A stretch of 64,000 nucleotides of DNA from Octopus bimaculoides. Taxonomy: Eukaryota. A program made the translations under genes and the position numbers. The notes below the pieces were generated by a model, which was not told the origin of the DNA, did not search any database, and saw nothing but the letters and a program-made list of their open reading frames with translations. The stretch's first letter is position 1; every line of letters begins with the position of its first letter. The DNA lies in the NCBI RefSeq assembly GCF_001194135.2, contig NC_068986.1, forward strand, positions 43,221,418-43,285,417, in the 5' to 3' direction. Of this stretch, positions 2,400 through 57,675 are shown piece by piece.

Positions 2400-2464
<65 letters not shown>

Positions 2465-2465
2465 T
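2367..2465. repeat. (AAT)n microsatellite, 5' flank of Dong-type LINE
   Basis: Directly visible. Confidence 0.97.
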
Positions 2466-4062
2466 AGCCGCAGAAAAAGGAAAGATCAAAGTATGGCTTA
2501 GATTGATTACCGAAAGGCTTTTGATAGTATTCCCCACATATGTATCCTAGAAACACTAGATATGAACAAGGTAGCACCAGTAATCATAAAATATATACAC
2601 TCTATCTATGAATAAATGGCAGGCAATACAGCTCCAAACAAAAGAGGGACTCCTAAAAACCAAAGCCATCTCCATTAGAAGAGGAATATTCCAGAAAGAC
2701 AGTCTCTCTCTCCACTCCTTTTTTGCTTGGCACTGACACCTTTATCTGACATGCTAAACAGAAATGGATGCGGATACAACTCTTACGGCAAGACAATCAG
2801 CCACCTCTTATACATGGACGATCTAAAACCGTACGCTACAAATGATAAACAGCTGGAAACATTGCTACAAACAGTACATGGATATAACAAAGAAATAAAC
2901 ATGAAATTTGACTTAGAAAAATGTGCCAAAGCAACTTTGAAAAGATGAAAACTAGTTAAGAGTAGCAACATCACACTAAATAAAGCAAATGAAATAAGAA
3001 AATCAGACCAAAGTCAAACATACAAGTATTTAGGAATCAATGAACTAGATAGGATAAAACACGAGCAAAACAAAAAAAACTGCTCTCAGTCTTTAAGTAA
3101 GCTGACAAATACAAACAAAAGTCATACTAACTAACAACTATAAAGATAAAGAAGAAACAAAAAAGCTGCATATCAGATGAAATCCAAAATAAACTATAAC
3201 AGCAACGGATAATGATAAAACGATGGCAAGACTAGCCCCTTCATGGCAAATAGTCGGCTAAACTAAACGCAAAAGAAATAGACAAAGCAAAATCCCAGCA
3301 ATGGCTGAGAAGCCCAGGACTCAAAGCAGAGACTGAAGGATTTTTAATTGCAACACAAGACCAAAGCTTCCCCACCAGAAATTACCAAAACATATTACGA
3401 AAAGAAATATAACAAGTAACTGCAGAATATGTAGAAATGGACAAGAAACAATAGATCATATTATCTCTGGCATCCCAGTCCTGGCTAAGAAGGAATATAT
3501 TCACAGAGACGACGGAGTTGGGACTTACATACACTGGAAGCTATGTCTACACTACGGAATAACAACAGAAAAAGATGGTATAGGCACACGCCAGAAAAGG
3601 TCACAGAACATGAGAAAGCAACAATACTATGGGATATACCAATACACACAGATGGAAAAATGTTGGCTAATAGGCCAGATATAGTTGTCAGAGATCATGA
3701 TGAAAAAAATGTGTTTTTTCATTGATGTTTCAATACCAACAGTCAACAACGTTTCTCCAAAAGAAATGTAGAAACTTTCAAAATATAAAAACCTGGAAAT
3801 AGAGGTAACTCGAACGTAGAGTCTGAAAACAGAAACAATTCCTATCATAGTGAGCGCATTGGATATGATAAAAAAATATTCAGATAAATACATAACAAAA
3901 ACACAAGGACTTACAAATATATATAACATACAGAAAATTGCACTACTAGGCACTGCACACATCCTACGTAAAACACTTTCAATACAGTAACCATAAGAGC
4001 ATCACAGCAAACCACAGCTGTACTCGGTAGTGCAGTGAAAGCACGTGATAAAAATAAGACTA

Positions 4063-4066
<4 letters not shown>
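2466..4066 (+). mobile_element. 5'-truncated R4/Dong-type non-LTR retrotransposon, family A (RT + zinc knuckle + restriction-like endonuclease), pseudogenised
   Basis: RT motifs DYRKAFDS, RRGIFQKDSLSPLLF, HLLYMDDLK; then CRIC..ETIDHI, ILWD, NRPDIVV, IDVSIP, KYKNL, QKIALLGTAHILRK; short 3'UTR running into (AAT)n. Confidence 0.92.

Positions 4067-4135
<69 letters not shown>
4067..4135. repeat. (AAT)n microsatellite, 3' flank or tail of Dong-type LINE
   Basis: Directly visible. Confidence 0.97.
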
Positions 4136-16027: not shown

Positions 16028-16260
16028 TGGGTATTTTTCCTTAAGAGGGTGGTGAGTTAGCAGAATTGTTAGCACGCCAGTCAAATGCTTAGCAGCATCT
16101 CGTCCGTCTTTAAATCCTGAGTTCAAATTTCGCTGCGGTCGACTTTTATCCTTTCGGTGTCGATAAATTAAGTGCCAAAAATAATAACTTCTTTTATTAA
16201 CTACCGGTGCATTGATGAGGATGACAGTGAATTGACAGAAATGCCAGTGAATTGCCACAC
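16028..16260 (+). mobile_element. S1 tRNA-derived SINE
   Basis: ggtgagttagcagaattgttagcacg (box A-like) ... gagttcaaatttcg (box B-like) ... cctttcggtgtcgataaattaagt. Confidence 0.8.
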
Positions 16261-19004: not shown

Positions 19005-19198
19005 AAGGCGGTGAGCTGGCAGAATAGTTAGCACGCTGGATGAAATACTAAGAGGTATTTCGCCCGTCTTTATGTCCTGAGTTCGAATTCCGCCGAGGTT
19101 GACTTTCCCTTTCATCCTTTCTGGTCGATAAAATAAGTATCAGTTGAACACGGGAGTCGATGTAATCGATTCATCTCCACCTCCTCCAAGCTGCCCTT
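19005..19198 (+). mobile_element. S1 SINE
   Basis: ggcggtgagctggcagaatagttagc...gagttcgaattccgccgaggttgactt. Confidence 0.85.
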
Positions 19199-20884: not shown

Positions 20885-21844
20885 GATCTTTTCCTTTTGG
20901 CCGGCACATTGAAAAAATATTTTTTTGTAACTAAACACTTTCAAATTTCGTATACTGGTAGAATGTGTCATTTAGAACATCATTTACTCTTGGCGTTTTT
21001 AAGAAAATTGTTTATTTTTGAAGTTATTTCGTGTTAAAGTTGTCGTATTTCGATAATTTCAACCAAGCAATGACGTCTATTGAGGTGAAAACAATTACTG
21101 CTGTGGTTTGTCAACAAGACGTTCCGGCGGTGTACATTTAGTTTGTCACTGTTATTTCTGATATATTTACATTTGAGATACACGTGTGTATAGTTTAATC
21201 AATTCAGTTATTAGTTATTTTAGCGTTTTCGAAATTGCCTATTTTGTTTGTTGAATTATTTTCGTTTGCTTAGTGTTTACTTAGAAAAAATTAATTTCTT
21301 GATGTGCCGTTCAAAGGGAAAAGATTCCATTTTCCCCCTACAATTTCTTCATTTTTCACATTTTTCCGTAACTCTAACCCTAAAATCCCAACCCTAACCC
21401 TAACCCTAAAACTCCAACCCTAACCGTCACCCTAAAACCTTAACCCTAACCCTAACTCTAAATCCCTAACCCTAATCCTAAAACCCAAACCCTAACACTA
21501 AAACCTGAACCCTAACGCTAACCCTAAAACCCTAAAGCTAAAACAAGTACAAACTCACGAACGAGATCATAAATAGCAGTGACAAACGAAATATACACCA
21601 CCGATAGTTGTTGTTGACAAACAACGGCAGTAATTTTATTCAGCTGAATACACGTCATTGATTGGTTGCAATTACCGAAATACGACAACTTTAACACGAA
21701 ATAATTTTGAAAATATAAACTTTTCTCAACATTACTAAGAGTAAAAGATGTTTTATGTGACACATTCTACCAGTGTCCGAAGTTTGAAAGTGTTTAGTTA
21801 CAAAAAATTAATTTCTCGATGTGCCGTTCAAAGGTAAAGGATCC
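20885..21844. mobile_element. Fold-back non-autonomous element with ~280-bp imperfect terminal inverted repeats
   Basis: 20885-21163 is the reverse complement of 21566-21844 (e.g. ttttgtaactaaacactttcaaa / tttgaaagtgtttagttacaaaa; tcgtgttaaagttgtcgtatttcg / cgaaatacgacaactttaacacga). Confidence 0.85.
21371..21540. repeat. Degenerate interstitial telomere-like (CCCTAA)n array
   Basis: Many ccctaa units with variants ccctaaaa, ctctaa, cactaa, cgctaa. Confidence 0.9.
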
Positions 21845-28574: not shown

Positions 28575-29880
28575 TTTATTGCCTTTGCAGAGCTTCTAAT
28601 GCTGGTGATGTACTACGGTATCAGCTGTTCACTACCAGTGAACTAAGGTAACACCCGTTATTTTTCGACCACCATCCGGTGTATTCGAGTGGTTCCAAGC
28701 AGTGCTGTTTTCTGCAAGTGATCCACCCTTATTGGAGCCCGTATTTGTTCCGTGTACTTCTCAGGATTTTTAATCACTGCTCCCAGGGTGCCGACAATTA
28801 TTGGTACTACTACCACCTTTTTCTACGACCACAACTGCTTAACCTCCCACATGAAACTCTCGCATCTCTCGACTTTTCTTTCTTCCTTATCGCATATTTT
28901 GTTGTCAGCTGGGCAAGCTATATCTACGATCCAGCATCGATTGCTTTCTTTCTCAATTTACACTATGTTTGGTTTCCTATTCGTATTATAATTTTCGATT
29001 ATGCCTTCGGGTTTATGTTCGTATCACATTTTTGCTCTGTCAAGTCCATACTTGTTGTAAAGCTTCCAATGGACAATCCTTGCTATGTTGTCATGACGTC
29101 TTTTATATTATTCCTGGGATACTGGCGTACATTGACCGATAATATGCCATACGGCTTTACAGTTTTGTCCACAAATTCTGCACTTATCATTTTCCGATAT
29201 GTTGTCTATTCTGTATTTGATGTAATTGGTTCTTAATGATTGCTCTTGGACAGCACAGATTAGAACCTCCGTTTCCGGTTTTAAATCAATTTTAGCCATC
29301 CATAGCTATCTTTTTTTCTCTGTCTGCCTTATCTGCAACATCCCTATGAAATTGTCCATGCATTCTTTTCCTTATCCACCTATTTTCAGTTTCCTTCATT
29401 CTCAAGTCCTTGTACAGTGCTTTATCTTTGCAATCTTTCATCCTACACAAGCCTGACCTTACTTCCAATAATAGTGATTTTGTGGCATTTTTACAAACCA
29501 CGCTATGTTGTTTTCTTCTACTTTAATGCTGTGCTTGCATCCAATCAGTCCTCTTCCCCTCTTTTTCTTGGTACATACTGTCTGTTTGTGTCACTTTTGG
29601 GGTGGATTATCCCATATCTAGTCAGTAACTTCCTTGTCTTTCTGTCTAAGCTTCTAGTTCGTATACTGTCCATGCGATAACCCTTGGTCCGTATCTAAGG
29701 AGTGAAACCGCATAGATGATAGCTTCAATCTTATTCCGTCCGTTTAATTTCGACTTACGGGTAAGTCTCAGTCTGCGCAAGTACGCCACCTTAATTTTTT
29801 CTGTCATTTCTTTCTCCATCAATTTATCCATTTCCAATACCCCCAAGTACTCATAGCCCGTATCATCTATTTTATTTCTT
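28575..29880 (-). mobile_element. R4/Dong-type LINE 3' half, family B
   Basis: YEYLGVLEMDK..KSKLNGRNKIEAI, ICAVQEQSLRTNYIK..CRICGQ..VWHII, QKTALLGTTRI; 3'UTR shared with 53995, 56788 and 56981. Confidence 0.9.
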
Positions 29881-33500: not shown

Positions 33501-35150
33501 GGAGATTAGATAGACTTCAAAATTTGGGCCGAGATGTGAGAAAAGAGATCAGCGCTTGTCATCGAGGTGATGCGCAAACATGTGCTATCCCAAACAGATC
33601 TATCCACGACAACCTCCACCTCATGTGATACAGCATAGACAGAGTGAGTAAGGAACCTGCCATGGATGGGGCCTTGATCAATTTGGGTCAATCTAAAGCC
33701 TTCGATAGGGTCGACCACCAAAATCTTAGCGGCCGTTCTGACGGAGGCCGGATTCGGTCCCGTTTTCCGTGGCTGAATCGCTGCAATGTACAGTGATATT
33801 TATTCGGTAGTTCGGATGAATCGTTACCTATTGGAACCATTCACCGTCATGCGCTCGGTCTGTCAAGGATATCACCTCTCGTCTCTTCTTGAGCTCTTAT
33901 TGCGGAAATTGGAGTAGTTGTAAGTCATGACTCGCGAACTAGGATGTGAGAAACCGTGTCGTCATACGCAGACCACATCAGCGTCATAGTGTCGAACAGC
34001 AGGCATATAGACATGGTCGAAACTACTATAAAAAAACGAGTCGGTGACAGGAGCAAAAATTAACCAAAAAAAGCCAATGGGCTTGCACCTCAGCACCCGG
34101 TGAGTCAAGTCCATACTGTGCAATAACTTCGTAGGACGCTGGACGGAGGGACTTGTTAAATTGCTCGGGTCCTGGTTTGGTCCAGATGTCCAAGTGGAGA
34201 AGAGCTGGGATGTGGTGACGAGCAGTGTGGCGAATCTCATCTGAAAATTCGGGCGCAGGAGGCCAATGAATACATCACCTCCTTCATATACTATCACCTA
34301 ACTGTCGTACCTTGCCTCAGATTATGTCAGACCAAACTGGAGCGCATACTCTTCGGCTGTCTGTAGGAAGGGCGCATTCCACTTGACAGTTGCTCGATTT
34401 GCTGTCAATACCCGCTGAATGGAGGGATGGACATGATGTGGCTGCTGATGCACAGACATGCGCCGAGGCTGCGACATCTCAGTGCTTCCTTGACGGTGAG
34501 CAGTTGTGGTCGCCGTTTGACAGACAAGATTTTTCTATAAAGCTCTCGTCTTTTCCTGAGCTTCAATCCTGGTTGAAGCGTAGACCTAGAGGAATAGCGC
34601 CTGGAAGTTAGAGTGTCGTCAAATATTCAGAGTTCTCTATCAGTCGGGCTATGCGGTCGGTGGAATTTCCACTCAGACGTTCTATAGAGTGTTAGTGGCA
34701 GGCAAGTGCGACGATCGTTCTTAGGCAGGCTTTGGGCATCGATGAGAATAGGTTAGTTTGCTCGTCTGTCGTGGAGGACTTTCGGACCAGAAGCCATGGA
34801 TAACTTCCAGAAATCTCTAACTTGGCAGTGCTACCATGGAGCATTTTCGATTCGGTATAAATTCTACAGGCATAGAAGTACCGTCAGCCAAGATTGTCCG
34901 CAAGCTTGCAGAGCGACGAAACTGTTTGGCACACTCTCGTTAGTGCCCGAGAATTGCTGAATTGTGGGCTTAAGTCTAACATTTGCTGTTGAGTGTAGGA
35001 CGGATCTGGTTATTAGTTGAATCCATCGTGAAGATCGCCCCGTCGCTTTCATTTCATCGGGAAGAACAAGCAGTGTTTCTTTGTGAGGTGAGCTCAGTGA
35101 AAGAGGTTGTGTGGTGAACCAGGTTAAAAGGGCTGAAGATTGACACGGCC
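30600..35150 (+). mobile_element. Near full-length L1/Tx1-like LINE (ORF1 with zinc knuckle and Thr/Ser-rich tail; ORF2 APE-RT-Cys), inactivated
   Basis: ORF1 from ~30750 (MTTKISD..), knuckle-like QLCGYSNHL (~31480); APE WTNHIGSSRSYLDRV..GCTDH; RT LGQSKAFDRVDH, SYADH (YADD variant); C-terminal DCP..SDETV motif ~34890. Confidence 0.88.
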
Positions 35151-35164
35151 TGCAGGGGACAGAG

Positions 35165-35340
35165 TTAAGGCGATTGCATTGACTCTAGTGTTCAACTGGT
35201 ACTTATTTTATCGCCCCTCCACCGGAAGGATGAAATGCAAAATCGTCCTCGAATTTGAAGTCAGAACGTAAAGTCAGAAAGCAACGCCTCTAAACATTTT
35301 TATTTGCAGTGGTGACGGTCCTGCCAGCTTACCGCCTAAA
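35165..35340 (-). mobile_element. S1 SINE, degraded
   Basis: ctggtacttattttatc...ggatgaaatgcaaaatc...ctgccagcttaccgcc. Confidence 0.75.
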
Positions 35341-37924: not shown

Positions 37925-38152
37925 TATTTCTTTACTACCCACAAGGGGCTACACACAGAGGGGACAAACAAGGACAGACAAACGGATTAAGTCGATTATA
38001 TCGACCCCAGTGCGTAACTGGTACTTATTTAATCGACCCCGAAAGGATGAAAGGCAAAGTCGACCTCGGCGGAATTTGAACTCGGAACGTAGCGGCAGAC
38101 GAAATACGGCTAAGCGTTTCGCCCGGCGTGCTAACGTTTCTGCCAGCCCGTG
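37925..38152 (-). mobile_element. S1 SINE, well preserved
   Basis: Clean tRNA-like head with A/B boxes on the minus strand; tail ..ccccttgtgggtagtaaagaaataa. Confidence 0.9.
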
Positions 38153-53729: not shown

Positions 53730-53985
53730 AGGCGGTGAGCTGGCAGAATCGTTAGCACGCTGGGCGAAATGTTTAGCAGTATTTTGCCCGCTGCTACGTT
53801 CTGAGTTCAAATTCCGCCGAGGTCGATTTTGCGTTTCATCCTTTCGGGGNNNNNNNNNNNNNNNNNNNNNNNNNNNNNNNNNGGGGGGGGGGGGGGTAAA
53901 TAAGTACCAGTTACGCACTGGTTTCAATATAATTGGCTTAATCCCTTCCCCCAAATTGCAGGCCTTGTGGCAAAATTTGAAACCA
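53730..53985 (+). mobile_element. S1 SINE (contains gap 53850-53881)
   Basis: ggcggtgagctggcagaatcgttagcacg...gagttcaaattccgccgaggtcga; preceded by (CAT/CGT/TGT/ATT)n. Confidence 0.88.
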
Positions 53986-53994
53986 TTATTATTA

Positions 53995-56520
53995 TTTTAT
54001 TGTCTTTCCACAGCTGCTAACGTTGAAGATGTACTACGGTGTCAGCTGTTCACTACCAGTGAACTAAGGTACCACTCATTATTTTTCGACCACCATTCGG
54101 AGTATTCGAGCGGTTCCAAGCAGTGCTGTTTTCTGCAAGGGATCCACTCTTATTTCAGCCCATATGTGTTCCATGTACTTCTCAAGATGTTTACTCACTG
54201 TTCCCAGGGCCCCGACAGTTATTGGTACTACTACCACCTTTTGCAGCGACCACAACTGCTTAACTTCCCATGCTAACCTGTGATATATATCGACTTTTTT
54301 TCTTCCTTATCGCATATTTTATTGTCAGCTGGGCATGCTATGATCCAGCATCATTTGCTTTCTTTTACAGTTAATACTATGTCTGGTTTCCTATTATCTA
54401 TCTCATGGTCGTACTGAATCATAAAATCGCATAGGATCTTTGCATTATCATTTTCGTTGATGCCTTCGAGTTTATATTCGTGCCACGTTTTTGCTCTCTC
54501 AAATTCATACTTGTCGCAAAGTGTCCAATGGACAATCGTTGCTATGTTGTCATGACGACTTTTATACTCTTTTGGGGCTAGTGCCGTACATTGACTAGTA
54601 ATATGCCATACAGTTTCACCATCTTGTCCACAAATTCTGGACTTATCACTTTCTGATGTGTTGCCTATTCCGTATTTGAAGTAATTGCTTCTTAATGCTT
54701 GCTCTTGGGCAGCACAGATAAGAGTTTCCGTTTCCCATTTTAAATCACTTTTAGTCACCATAAGCATCTTCTTTCTTTGTCTGCCTTATCTGCAACATCT
54801 CTATGAAATTTTCCATGCATTCTTTTCCTTATCCATCTAATTTCAGTTTCATTCATTCTCAAGTCCATGTACAGTGCTTTATCTTTGCGATCTTCTATCC
54901 TACACACGTTTGACCTTTTTACTTTCAATAATAGTGGTTCTGTGGTATTTCTTTTACATACAATGCTATACTGTTTTCTTCTGCTCTAATGCTGTGTTCG
55001 CATCCAATAAGTCCTCTTCCCTCTTTTTCTTGGTACATACAGTCTGTTTGTGTCACGTTTTGGGTGGGATATCCCACTTCTAGTCAGCAACTTCCTTGTC
55101 TTTCTGATTAAGCTGTTTAGTTCGTCTACTGTCTATCCGATTACCCCTGCTCCATAACTAAGGAGTGAAACCGCCCATGTGTTGATAACTTCAATCTTAT
55201 TCTGTCCATTTAATTTCGACTTAAGAAAGCAAAGATGGTAAGATATGACCAAAGAATGAAGAATAGGTTATTCAGAGTAGATCAGAAGAGCTTCTACAAA
55301 GAAATAAATGGAGAGTGTACACATGAAAAATTGATACCAGATAACATTAAAAGTTAAAGTTTTTGGAGTGACATCTGGAGCAAAGACAAGGAGCACGAGA
55401 AAGATGCTGAATGGTTGCAAGAACCTAAAACAAACAGTAGTCTGTCCACAACAGGCAGAACTGGTCGTCTCAGGGAAGTGAAGGAAACCAGCAAAAGAAT
55501 GGGCAACTGGAAAGGCCTGGGATCAGATGGAGTTCAAGGCTACTGGATCAAAAGATTTGGTGAATGTCATGCACGCATAGCTGCACAACTCAATACCTTG
55601 TTAAATGCCGACCAAGTAACACTAGAGTGACTGATAATGGGTAGCATATTGCTCTGCTTGAAAAACATCGTAAAAAGTAATACGGTAGACAATTACAGGC
55701 CGGTATCCTGCTTGCCAGTTATGTAGAAATTATTTACTGGAATAGTCGAAGAGTCAATGTATGGATATCTGGGAGAAATGAAGTCCTGCCACATGAGCGG
55801 AAGAGTTGCAATCGTAAGTGCAGAGGTACCAAGGATCAGCTCCTGGTAGACAAAGCTGTACTTAGAGACTCCAAGAGGAGGAAAACTAACTTGACCATGT
55901 CATGGATCGATCATCGTAAGGCATACGATATGATCCCATATTCCTGGATTATGGTATGTATTCCATCGAATGTTGAGCAATTGCTTGGAAAAAGTATGGC
56001 GAATTGGAGGACAGAACTGACAGCATATGGAAGAAGCCTAGGGACGATAAAAATCAGGAGAGGCATCTTTCAAGAGAACTGTCTGTCCCCACTGATCTCT
56101 GTACTGTGCATGATTACACTAACGCTGATTCTGAGGAACGCAAAGGCTGGGTATGTATTCAAGAGCCGCCTACAAAATGTTAACTATTTGTTATTGATAG
56201 ATGACCTCAAGTTTTATGGTAAAGATGAAGTCCAAATTTGTTCCCTTTTAGATACGATGTATACTTTCAGTGGTCATATCGGAATGGAGTTCTGACTGAA
56301 AAAGTGTGGTGTGTTAGCCTTAAACAGAAACAAAATTAGATGTGTGGACGGGCTAGCGATACAGTCGGGGGAGGTTATGAAGCAAGTAGAAAAGACGGGC
56401 AATAAGTACTTGGGGATGTTAGAAATGGATGAATTGATGCAGAAAGAAATGACAGAAAAATTTATGGTGAAGTACTTGCGCAGACTGACACTGATCCTTA
56501 AGTCGAAATTAAACGGACGA
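53995..56520 (-). mobile_element. R4/Dong-type LINE family B with inverted 5' part (3' half on minus at 53995-55225; upstream half on plus at 55226-56520)
   Basis: Minus part runs LKSKLNGQNKIE to the RLE domain and 3'UTR. Plus part runs RLFRVDQKSFYKE through [29 protein letters not shown] to LKSKLNGR. Confidence 0.88.
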
Positions 56521-56537
56521 ATTATTATTACTATTAC

Positions 56538-56577
<40 letters not shown>

Positions 56578-56578
56578 G
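56521..56578. repeat. (ATT)n microsatellite
   Basis: Directly visible. Confidence 0.95.
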
Positions 56579-56790
56579 TTGTTCAGTAGTTTTATTTTTA
56601 TAACGTGCTTTCACTTCACTACCGAGCGCAGCTCTGTGCGCCTTGGGTATGTGCTTTGGTTTGCTGTGGTGCTCTTATGTTTACTGTATTGAAAGTGTTT
56701 TGCGTAGAATGTGTGCAGTACCCAGTAGTGCAATTTTCTGTATGTTATATATATTTGTAAGTCCTGGTGTTTTTGTTATGTATTTGTCTG
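56579..56790 (-). mobile_element. R4/Dong-type LINE family A, ~210-bp 3' end
   Basis: Reverse complement matches 3885-4066 (cagacaaatacataacaaaaacaccaggact...taagagcaccacagcaaacc). Confidence 0.88.
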
Positions 56791-56933
56791 CTTGCAATCG
56801 CTCGAATACTCCGAATGGTGCTCGAAAAGTAAGGAGTGTTACCTTAGTTCACTGGTAGTGAACAGCTGACACCGTAGAACATCTTCAGCGTTAGAAGCTG
56901 TGCAAAGACAATAATAAAATAATAATAATAATA

Positions 56934-56975
<42 letters not shown>

Positions 56976-57102
56976 TTATTGTCTTTGCACAGCTTCTAAC
57001 GCTGAAGATGTTCTACGGTGTCAGCTGTTCACTACCAGTGAACTAAGGTAACACTCCTTACTTTTCGAGCACCATTCGGAGTATTCGAGCGATTGCAAGC
57101 AG
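56788..57102. repeat. Perfect palindrome: 122-bp arms (56788-56909 and 56981-57102) around an (AAT)n/(ATT)n centre
   Basis: Base-by-base comparison by eye found no mismatch between the arms. The arms are the family B 3' end. Confidence 0.93.
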
Positions 57103-57394
57103 TGCTGTTTTCTGCAAGTGCTCCACCCTTATTGAAGCCCGTTTGTTCCATGTACTTCTCAAGATTATTACTCACTTTTCTCAGGGCTCCGACAGTTATT
57201 GGTACTACTACCACCTTTTTCAGTGACCACAACTGATTAATCTCTCAAGCTAACCTGTCATATCTATCGACATTTCTTTCTTCCTTATCGCATACCTTGT
57301 TGTCAGCTGAGCATACTATATCTATAAACCAACATCGTTTGGTTTCTTTCTTAGTTAACACTATGTCTGGTTTCCTATTCTCTATGATGATGCC

Positions 57395-57469: not shown

Positions 57470-57675
57470 AAGAGGCGAGCTGGCAAGATCGTTAGCATGC
57501 TGGACGAAATGCTTAGCGGTACTTCGCTTGTAATTAATTTCTTAGTTCAAATTCCGCCAAGGTCGACTTTGCCTTTCATCCTTTCGGGGTTGATAAATTA
57601 AGTACCAGTAATCTACAATTCCCCTCTCATTCCTCCCCGCAAATTTCAGGTCTTGTGCCTTCAGTAGAAAGGATT
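57470..57675 (+). mobile_element. S1 SINE between (ATT)n arrays (57396-57468 and ~57685-57740)
   Basis: ggcgagctggcaagatcgttagc..gttcaaattccgccaaggtcgactttgcctttcatcctttcgggg. Confidence 0.88.

Follow-up and report, generated by a model that had tools for sequence, protein, structure and literature searches.

In this study, we analyzed a 64,000-nucleotide stretch of the Octopus bimaculoides genome (assembly GCF_001194135.2, contig NC_068986.1, positions 43,221,418 to 43,285,417 of the forward strand; the window), with a focus on a copy of a long interspersed nuclear element (LINE) at window positions 53995-56520 whose 5' half lies inverted relative to its 3' half. The window is AT-rich eukaryotic DNA (36.7% GC) and has five N gaps. 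Our analyses confirmed the half-flipped copy as a real feature at these coordinates. The copy is old and dead, and it belongs to a family, referred to here as family B, whose sequence features place it among the LINEs with a restriction-like endonuclease (RLE) that target (TAA)n microsatellites. The most economical reading of the structure is that it probably arose in one retrotransposition event of a family-B LINE that was resolved by twin priming.

Organization of the Half-Flipped Copy

On the plus strand, the region 53985-56577 is composed of (ATT)n, 1231 nt of antisense LINE, ~1294 nt of the same LINE in sense orientation and (ATT)19. Read on the element strand, this order becomes (AAT)19, an antisense segment running from amino acid (aa) 584 to aa 142, a sense segment running from aa 576 to aa 958, the 3' untranslated region (3'UTR) and (AAT)n. 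The direct half, which is on the minus strand, bears the 3' end of the element at the target, with 3'UTR, hairpin and (AAT)n all found within 53985-54084. Its downstream target or tail microsatellite (53985-53994, minus strand) is (AAT)n on the element strand and (ATT)n on the plus strand by direct reading. The adjoining 3'UTR (53995-54084, minus strand), ending ...GACAATAAAATAATAAT, was delimited by homology to other copies in the window and to L001, an independent contiguous relative on an ENA metagenome scaffold that is 74% identical, retains its 3' end intact and carries an (AAT)n tail. Alignment and a consensus fold of six family 3' ends place a conserved stem-loop within this 3'UTR at ~54039-54075 (minus strand). 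The direct coding part (54085-55225, minus strand; aa ~576-958) was identified by translation and TBLASTN and comprises a linker, a CCHC motif (CRICGQDGETVWHITSQC) and an RLE motif (RKPDIV...).

The inverted half (55226-56519, plus strand; aa ~142-584) was defined by a Pfam RVT_1 match, TBLASTN and mapping to L001, and consists of the N-terminal extension and the reverse transcriptase (RT) domain as far as LKSKLNGR. This half lacks a 3' end, 3'UTR or tail of its own and adjoins the upstream microsatellite directly, with GGACG followed by AATTATT. That microsatellite (56520-56577, minus strand) is (AAT)19 on the element strand, and TRF reported 19 copies of ATT at 56521-56577. Both flanks are (ATT)n on the plus strand, an orientation that fits the element as oriented by the direct half.

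A short overlap is shared by the two halves, at the outer end of the inverted one and the start of the direct one. Window positions 56497-56518 read CTTAAGTCGAAATTAAACGGAC; positions 55204-55225, when reverse-complemented, read CTTAAGTCGAAATTAAATGGAC, with a single base differing over 22 nt. Extension by one base (55203/56519) gives an overlap of 23 nt with two differences. The copy at the 5' end of the direct half (55203-55225, minus strand; CTTAAGTCGAAATTAAATGGACA) has both of its CpGs decayed, and the copy at the flank-side end of the inverted half (56497-56519, plus strand; CTTAAGTCGAAATTAAACGGACG) has both intact. As the first-pass annotation of this DNA had proposed, both differences are CpG to TpG/CpA changes in the direct copy when judged against an independent copy in the window, the 29.7-kb copy (AAACGGACGG). 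Because they differ at two CpG sites, the overlap copies are two separate physical DNA segments, which argues against a flipped contig. We also considered the 22-nt overlap as a means of dating the copy, but it is powerless in this respect since the independent 29.7-kb copy is nearly identical over the same stretch.

At the inner inversion junction (55223-55225), comparison with L001 indicated that an AAG is assignable to either half, L001 having GCAAAG followed by AAAGCAAAG and the window CTTAAG followed by AAAGCAAAG. The junction has no filler sequence, and the AKKAK motif by which the junction AAG was judged is present in P0002, an intact 959-aa relative. A 3-nt microhomology is by itself weak evidence.

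The Halves Are Neighbouring Parts of One Element

Three mappings agree that the two halves are neighbouring parts of one element. In BLASTN searches of the halves against the window, a contiguous minus-strand copy at 29872-28575 was found to run through the breakpoint with 82-86% identity, matching the last 135 nt of the inverted half together with positions 3-1230 of the direct half. In L001, positions 307-1619 correspond to window 55223-56524 (plus strand) and positions 1592-2845 to window 55225-53985 (minus strand). With P0002 as the TBLASTN query, aa 141-583 map to 55223-56520 (plus strand) and aa 576-958 to 55225-54085 (minus strand). The coordinates and sequence strings first given for the half-flip geometry were exact. 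BLASTN identified no other donor for the inverted half within the window. By our estimate (~45 nt of 2.5-3.5 kb), the ends of unrelated fragments would coincide to within ~23 nt by chance in roughly 1-2% of cases, and chance is no serious explanation for the coinciding breakpoints.

The extent of decay also bears on a shared origin, as halves of different ages had been named beforehand as an outcome that would speak against it. The halves appear equal in age, each having 63.2% identity to P0004. Four stops and one frameshift are present in the inverted half and three stops and two frameshifts in the direct half, with observed/expected CpG ratios of 0.55 and 0.66, respectively. The independent 29.7-kb copy, with 52.5% identity to P0004 and 14 stops, is clearly older or more diverged than the half-flipped copy. 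These values are consistent with two equally decayed halves of the same source and age, a comparison of low power given that the inverted half has no subfamily markers.

Family B as an RLE-Class LINE Targeting (TAA)n

The inverted half has a Pfam RVT_1 match (E=2e-9), and translation of the direct half revealed CRICG...H...C and RKPDIV motifs C-terminal to the RT. The homologues of family B, 596 of which were found, are ~960-aa single-ORF proteins. Among the 120 homologues listed with precomputed Pfam matches, these were to PF00078 (RVT_1) and, in a few, PF13966, with no endonuclease family. The best matches among solved structures (PDB) were R2 retrotransposon proteins, ahead of L1 ORF2p, and a weak second PDB stretch (i-Evalue 0.13) aligns the KPD...D endonuclease region. 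The RT with C-terminal CCHC and KPD..D motifs, the R2 structure matches and the (TAA)n-flanked relatives together assign family B to the RLE class at the level of sequence, in agreement with the class and the target originally proposed for it.

A Dong element has been reported in an O. bimaculoides repeat library (PMC9115989). Like Dong of Bombyx mori and other (TAA)n-specific LINEs of the R4 clade, the family in the window has a single ~960-aa ORF with the RT followed by CCHC and PD..D-type endonuclease motifs, no APE domain, and (AAT)n on both sides in sense orientation. The label Dong-like as applied here to family B is a provisional one that refers to architecture and target. The flanking (AAT)n is found in window copies and many relatives, and all assessable window copies as well as six copies in the long-read contig L083 keep it in sense orientation. 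Four distant relatives (L019, L026, L027 and L028; 43-46% aa identity to P0002) have (ATT)n-type repeats after their 3' ends, which may reflect a sub-lineage that uses this microsatellite in reverse orientation. Head-to-tail arrays of three to six Dong-like copies, in one orientation and with (AAT)n between them, were observed in L083 (1-12418) and L086 (1000-11800), which suggests that in these arrays the tail of each insertion supplies the target of the next.

The 3'UTR stem-loop of the family has a 15-bp stem with two compensatory pairs in relatives according to the consensus fold of the six 3' ends. The same stem-loop (GTGTTACCTTAGTTCACTGG.AGTGAACAGCTGACAC) was observed in the family-B 3'UTRs at 28575-28675 and 56974-57074 and in those of L001, L002 and L083. 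It is likely a recognition element for the element's own reverse transcriptase.

Twin Priming as the Probable Origin of the Copy

Twin priming is said to have been defined for L1 by Ostertag and Kazazian in 2001 (in Genome Res 11:2059). Since the inverted half has neither 3'UTR nor tail and adjoins the microsatellite at a position internal to the element, it is not a copy that was inserted in the ordinary way through target-primed reverse transcription (TPRT). Its outer end (aa 584) coincides with where the direct half begins (aa 576). Such a coincidence follows from twin priming, in which the first cDNA stops at the site of the second primer, and is a signature predicted by twin priming and not by unrelated insertions. 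The layout from which twin priming had initially been proposed was borne out: the inverted half has no 3' end, its outer end equals the direct start, and the halves meet without filler at 3 nt of microhomology.

In a twin-priming event at this locus, the element endonuclease would nick the (ATT)n strand (the plus strand of the window), and by analogy with TPRT the 3'-OH at ~53994 would prime on the (AAU)n tail of the RNA. The first-strand cDNA would then run from the 3' end to the LKSKLNG codons (53995-55225). Before it got further, the opposite (AAT)n strand would be cut, the upstream (AAT)19 presumably being this second primer, and its 3'-OH at ~56520 would anneal weakly to the RNA at ...GGACGG/AAUAAGAUU. 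A second cDNA primed there would extend from LKSKLNGR toward the 5' end over ~1.29 kb, from 56519 back to 55226. The templates of the two cDNAs would overlap by the 22-23 nt that are seen in the sequence. Joining of the cDNA 3' ends at the AAG/CTT microhomology, followed by fill-in, would give the product now present. The copy would later have decayed in place while other microsatellite-targeting repeats inserted around it.

The Upstream Flank and Further Copies

The upstream flank is a nest of insertions, as (ATT)19 doubles as the tail of a fragment of family A, a second and distinct RLE-class (TAA)n LINE. This fragment (56583-56790, minus strand) is a 208-nt 5'-truncated 3' end. A longer family-A copy with an (AAT)n tail is present on the plus strand at 2463-4066 or 2463-4134, and over the 3' end the two copies are 83% identical and differ by an indel of 22 nt. 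To the right of the family-A fragment, 56788-56944 holds 138 nt of sense-oriented family-B 3' end followed by (AAT)6. This piece and a minus-strand family-B copy at 56974-57385 together form a palindrome (56788-57102, centre 56945) that has practically no spacer. Overall complementarity of the arms is 97%. Their unique parts, 56788-56921 and 56969-57102, have 100% identity to each other, against a divergence of ~9% from other family-B copies. The left arm ends precisely where the family-A fragment has its 5' junction, with 3 nt (CTG/CAG) common to both. This palindrome could be a real fold-back ("snap-back") made as the family-A 5' junction formed; it could also reflect gene conversion between arms, or be a hairpin introduced by the assembler at (AAT)n/(ATT)n.

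The initial proposal had called for a survey of other 5' inversions. We surveyed 82 metagenome loci for matches on both strands, the 80 best-covering matches, mostly intact and near full-length, being kept, and contigs L083-L087 from long-read assemblies (~100 kb, ~19 Dong-like fragments). No second inverted copy was identified among the 82 loci, the ~19 fragments or the other copies in the window, a result that counts against twin priming but says little about inversion frequency, as the sample favours intact copies. One locus in L085 (13000-16700) has sense aa 380-950 directly adjoining antisense aa 388-1, with both parts breaking at the conserved YDMIPHSW motif and a run of C at the junction. 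As a candidate twin-primed copy, this 13.0-16.7 kb region was rejected on account of its wrong order, the absence of a tail at the junction and a match of ~17/27 nt (~63%) across the apparent overlap. By sequence, its sense and antisense parts look like different elements.

Weighing Twin Priming against Other Explanations

Several additional observations weigh against twin priming. The half-flipped structure is known from a single copy. No unique target-site duplication is readable, since the target is a microsatellite; it flanks the copy on either side as (ATT)n of one orientation. The first-pass annotation had raised the possibility of AAT-like microhomology at the internal priming site. The (AAT)n primer does pair there at 2-3 contiguous nt, or imperfectly at 6/10, but between 6% and 25% of element positions pair equally well, and the complementarity is no better than chance. 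From studies of other elements, second-strand nicking by R2 has been placed after first-strand synthesis and with a 2-bp offset only (PMC11601368), and long 3' overhangs have been proposed as needed for 5' inversion (PMC4245944). Given this nicking order and overhang requirement, twin priming is not expected to be easy for the RLE class. Confidence in the local assembly is also reduced: all five gaps of the window are at low-complexity runs, as is typical of a short-read scaffold, and the suspiciously perfect palindrome lies only 270 bp away.

The last of these points raise the question of an assembly artefact, in which a ~1.3-kb repeat contig was misoriented, or was taken from another family-B copy, and was joined without Ns at what would truly be a simple minus-strand copy truncated at its 5' end. 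The same layout, with a short terminal duplication, would result from a flipped contig that overlapped its neighbour at one end. In addition to the placement of the N gaps, the outer junction enters a 57-nt microsatellite, where joins are unreliable, and the zero-spacer palindrome with its identical unique arms could itself be an assembler fold-back at (AAT)n/(ATT)n. However, there are no Ns at either junction, and the inner junction has only a 6-nt palindrome (CTTAAG) in common and no long k-mer. The overlap copies differ at 2/23 positions, which is impossible for the same genomic bases seen twice. The equal decay of the halves fits one old copy, although a borrowed contig of similar age would look alike. 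On balance, we consider an artefact unlikely. A second possibility, and in our view quite an improbable one, is that two family-B copies and a family-A insertion are involved. A plus-strand copy (55226-56519 plus 56788-56925, with an (AAT)6 tail) would have been split at LKSKLNGR by the family-A fragment (56521-56790 in this scheme), with ~1.1 kb deleted, and a minus-strand copy of independent origin (53995-55225), its truncation falling at that same place by chance, would lie head to head with it. The succession of B (aa 142-584), (ATT)19, family A, B (last 138 nt) and (AAT)6 can indeed be read as one interrupted plus-strand copy, and it is general knowledge that LINE insertions are able to delete target DNA. 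This scheme nonetheless requires the ~1-2% breakpoint coincidence, a head-to-head join without target between the copies, a family-B copy in the wrong orientation for (ATT)n and a family-A insertion at a non-target site. Moreover, the unique part of the 138-nt piece has 100% identity to 56974-57102 and only ~91% identity to other copies, and the piece is therefore a duplicate of its neighbour and not part of an old plus-strand copy, unless gene conversion between the arms erased the differences.

An inversion after insertion would also start from a 5'-truncated minus-strand copy (aa 142-958), the 5' 1.3 kb of which later inverted through a staggered break that left the 23-nt inverted duplication. 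By the established staggered-break model, one such breakpoint gives the same layout, inverted duplication included. Such an event would have needed a break placed precisely where element and microsatellite meet, with no microsatellite units carried to the inner junction and no element sequence left past 56519. There are also no long inverted repeats to mediate it, and we consider this origin very doubtful. Recombination between the 23-nt inverted repeats themselves was rejected, since the pre-inversion state that it implies is less natural than the present one. Scarcely credible, finally, is an origin by self-copying of the first cDNA from a folded-back 3' end, or by a jump of the RT to an antisense transcript. 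Junctions of antisense sequence to upstream target are documented at 5' ends for R2 proteins in human cells (PMC11371274), but a snap-back would duplicate sequence of the direct part as a palindrome, and only 23 nt are common to both halves here, while a jump to antisense RNA leaves the breakpoint coincidence unexplained. We rejected a snap-back origin for the inverted half because the geometry is wrong, this half being almost wholly sequence that is absent from the direct half. The palindrome at 56788-57102, unlike the inverted half, does have the inverted-duplicate property of snap-back junctions.

Relationship to Known Systems

Twin-primed L1 copies of human and mouse are closely similar in structure to the copy in the window. 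In both, the 5' segment of one element is inverted and the 3' segment that follows it is direct, the flank-side end of the inverted segment equals the start of the direct one with a short duplication, the inner junction has microhomology, and the 3' tail is at the target. The two elements themselves differ: L1 has an APE-type endonuclease, poly(A)/T-rich targets, staggered cuts of ~15 bp and readable target-site duplications, whereas the window element is of the putative RLE class and has a (TAA)n target, no readable duplication and a microsatellite strand as its presumed second primer. In cell assays, human L1 in human cells accounted for nearly all 5' inversions; one further case was a Nimb-2_DR insert, and zebrafish ZfL2-1 gave none. 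The authors saw long 3' overhangs as the cause of this bias (PMC4245944).

Within the RLE class, the snap-back junctions of R2 proteins are the nearest precedent, although their geometry is different. "Snap-back" is a category of 5' junctions of R2-protein (PRINT) transgenes in human cells, for which twin priming was cited as related (PMC11371274). As in the window copy, an RLE-class enzyme is involved and antisense element sequence is joined to the upstream target. Unlike the window copy, in which unique sequence makes up the inverted part and complements the direct one, R2 snap-backs copy nascent cDNA or nearby target and thus produce inverted duplications, and they are engineered insertions in human cells and not natural genomic copies. 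R2 integration models, which involve a four-way junction (PMC6895275, PMC11601368, PMC13000458), concern an enzyme architecture in common with the window element. In them, cleavage of the second strand follows first-strand synthesis, and the nicked 3' end is protected. In a twin-primed copy, by contrast, the second strand would be cut and used as an RT primer with first-strand synthesis no further than ~1.2 kb from the 3' end. In Khadgi et al., twin priming appears only as an aberration that is possibly related (PMC6895275).

In the literature searched, which left most subscription journals outside its scope, we found no report of a natural twin-primed LINE of the RLE class or from an invertebrate, and twin priming was connected with LINEs having a restriction-like endonuclease only by passing citation. 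The statement in the first-pass annotation that such events are not well documented holds for natural RLE-class copies in that literature, but not for antisense junctions made by R2 proteins, which have been published (PMC11371274).

Other Repeats in the Window

A SINE-like (short interspersed nuclear element-like) repeat is located at 53732-53984, just beyond the downstream (AAT)n. The repeat, which starts GGCGGTGAGCTGGCAGAATCGTTAGCACGC, has at least seven occurrences, often flanked by (ATT)n on the plus strand, with further copies at 57474-57589, 38017-38150, 19008-19144, 16051-16177, 35143-35335 and 40641-40745. It was not recognized by ARAGORN or Rfam, and tRNA and Rfam scans of the window found nothing. 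An inverted repeat with no relationship to the LINE is present at 20885-21162 and 21566-21843 (278 nt, 83% complementary, 403 nt between arms).

Implications

Twin priming is known from L1, and a natural case in the RLE class has not been clearly reported. The single decayed copy described here does not establish twin priming for that class, and that microsatellite-specific LINEs of the RLE class undergo true twin priming in vivo is a tentative proposition that we regard as rather less probable than the contrary. The palindrome at 56788-57102 might be a natural counterpart of the snap-back junctions formed by R2 proteins in human cells.

If twin priming does occur in these elements, the second target strand would be cut during first-strand synthesis, in the present copy within ~1.2 kb of the 3' end, and RT could start at an internal RNA site from the 3'-OH of the second strand with almost no base-pairing. 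R2 and its relatives are under development for gene insertion, and the way in which these RLE-class LINEs cut and use the second strand in cells has been called unresolved (PMC11601368, PMC11371274). A natural copy of a Dong-like element that did arise by twin priming would show that early second-strand nicking and priming on internal RNA sites are possible in this class, and fossil copies of this kind, in genomes rich in such elements, would represent a countable, genome-wide readout of when the second strand is cleaved in the RLE class.

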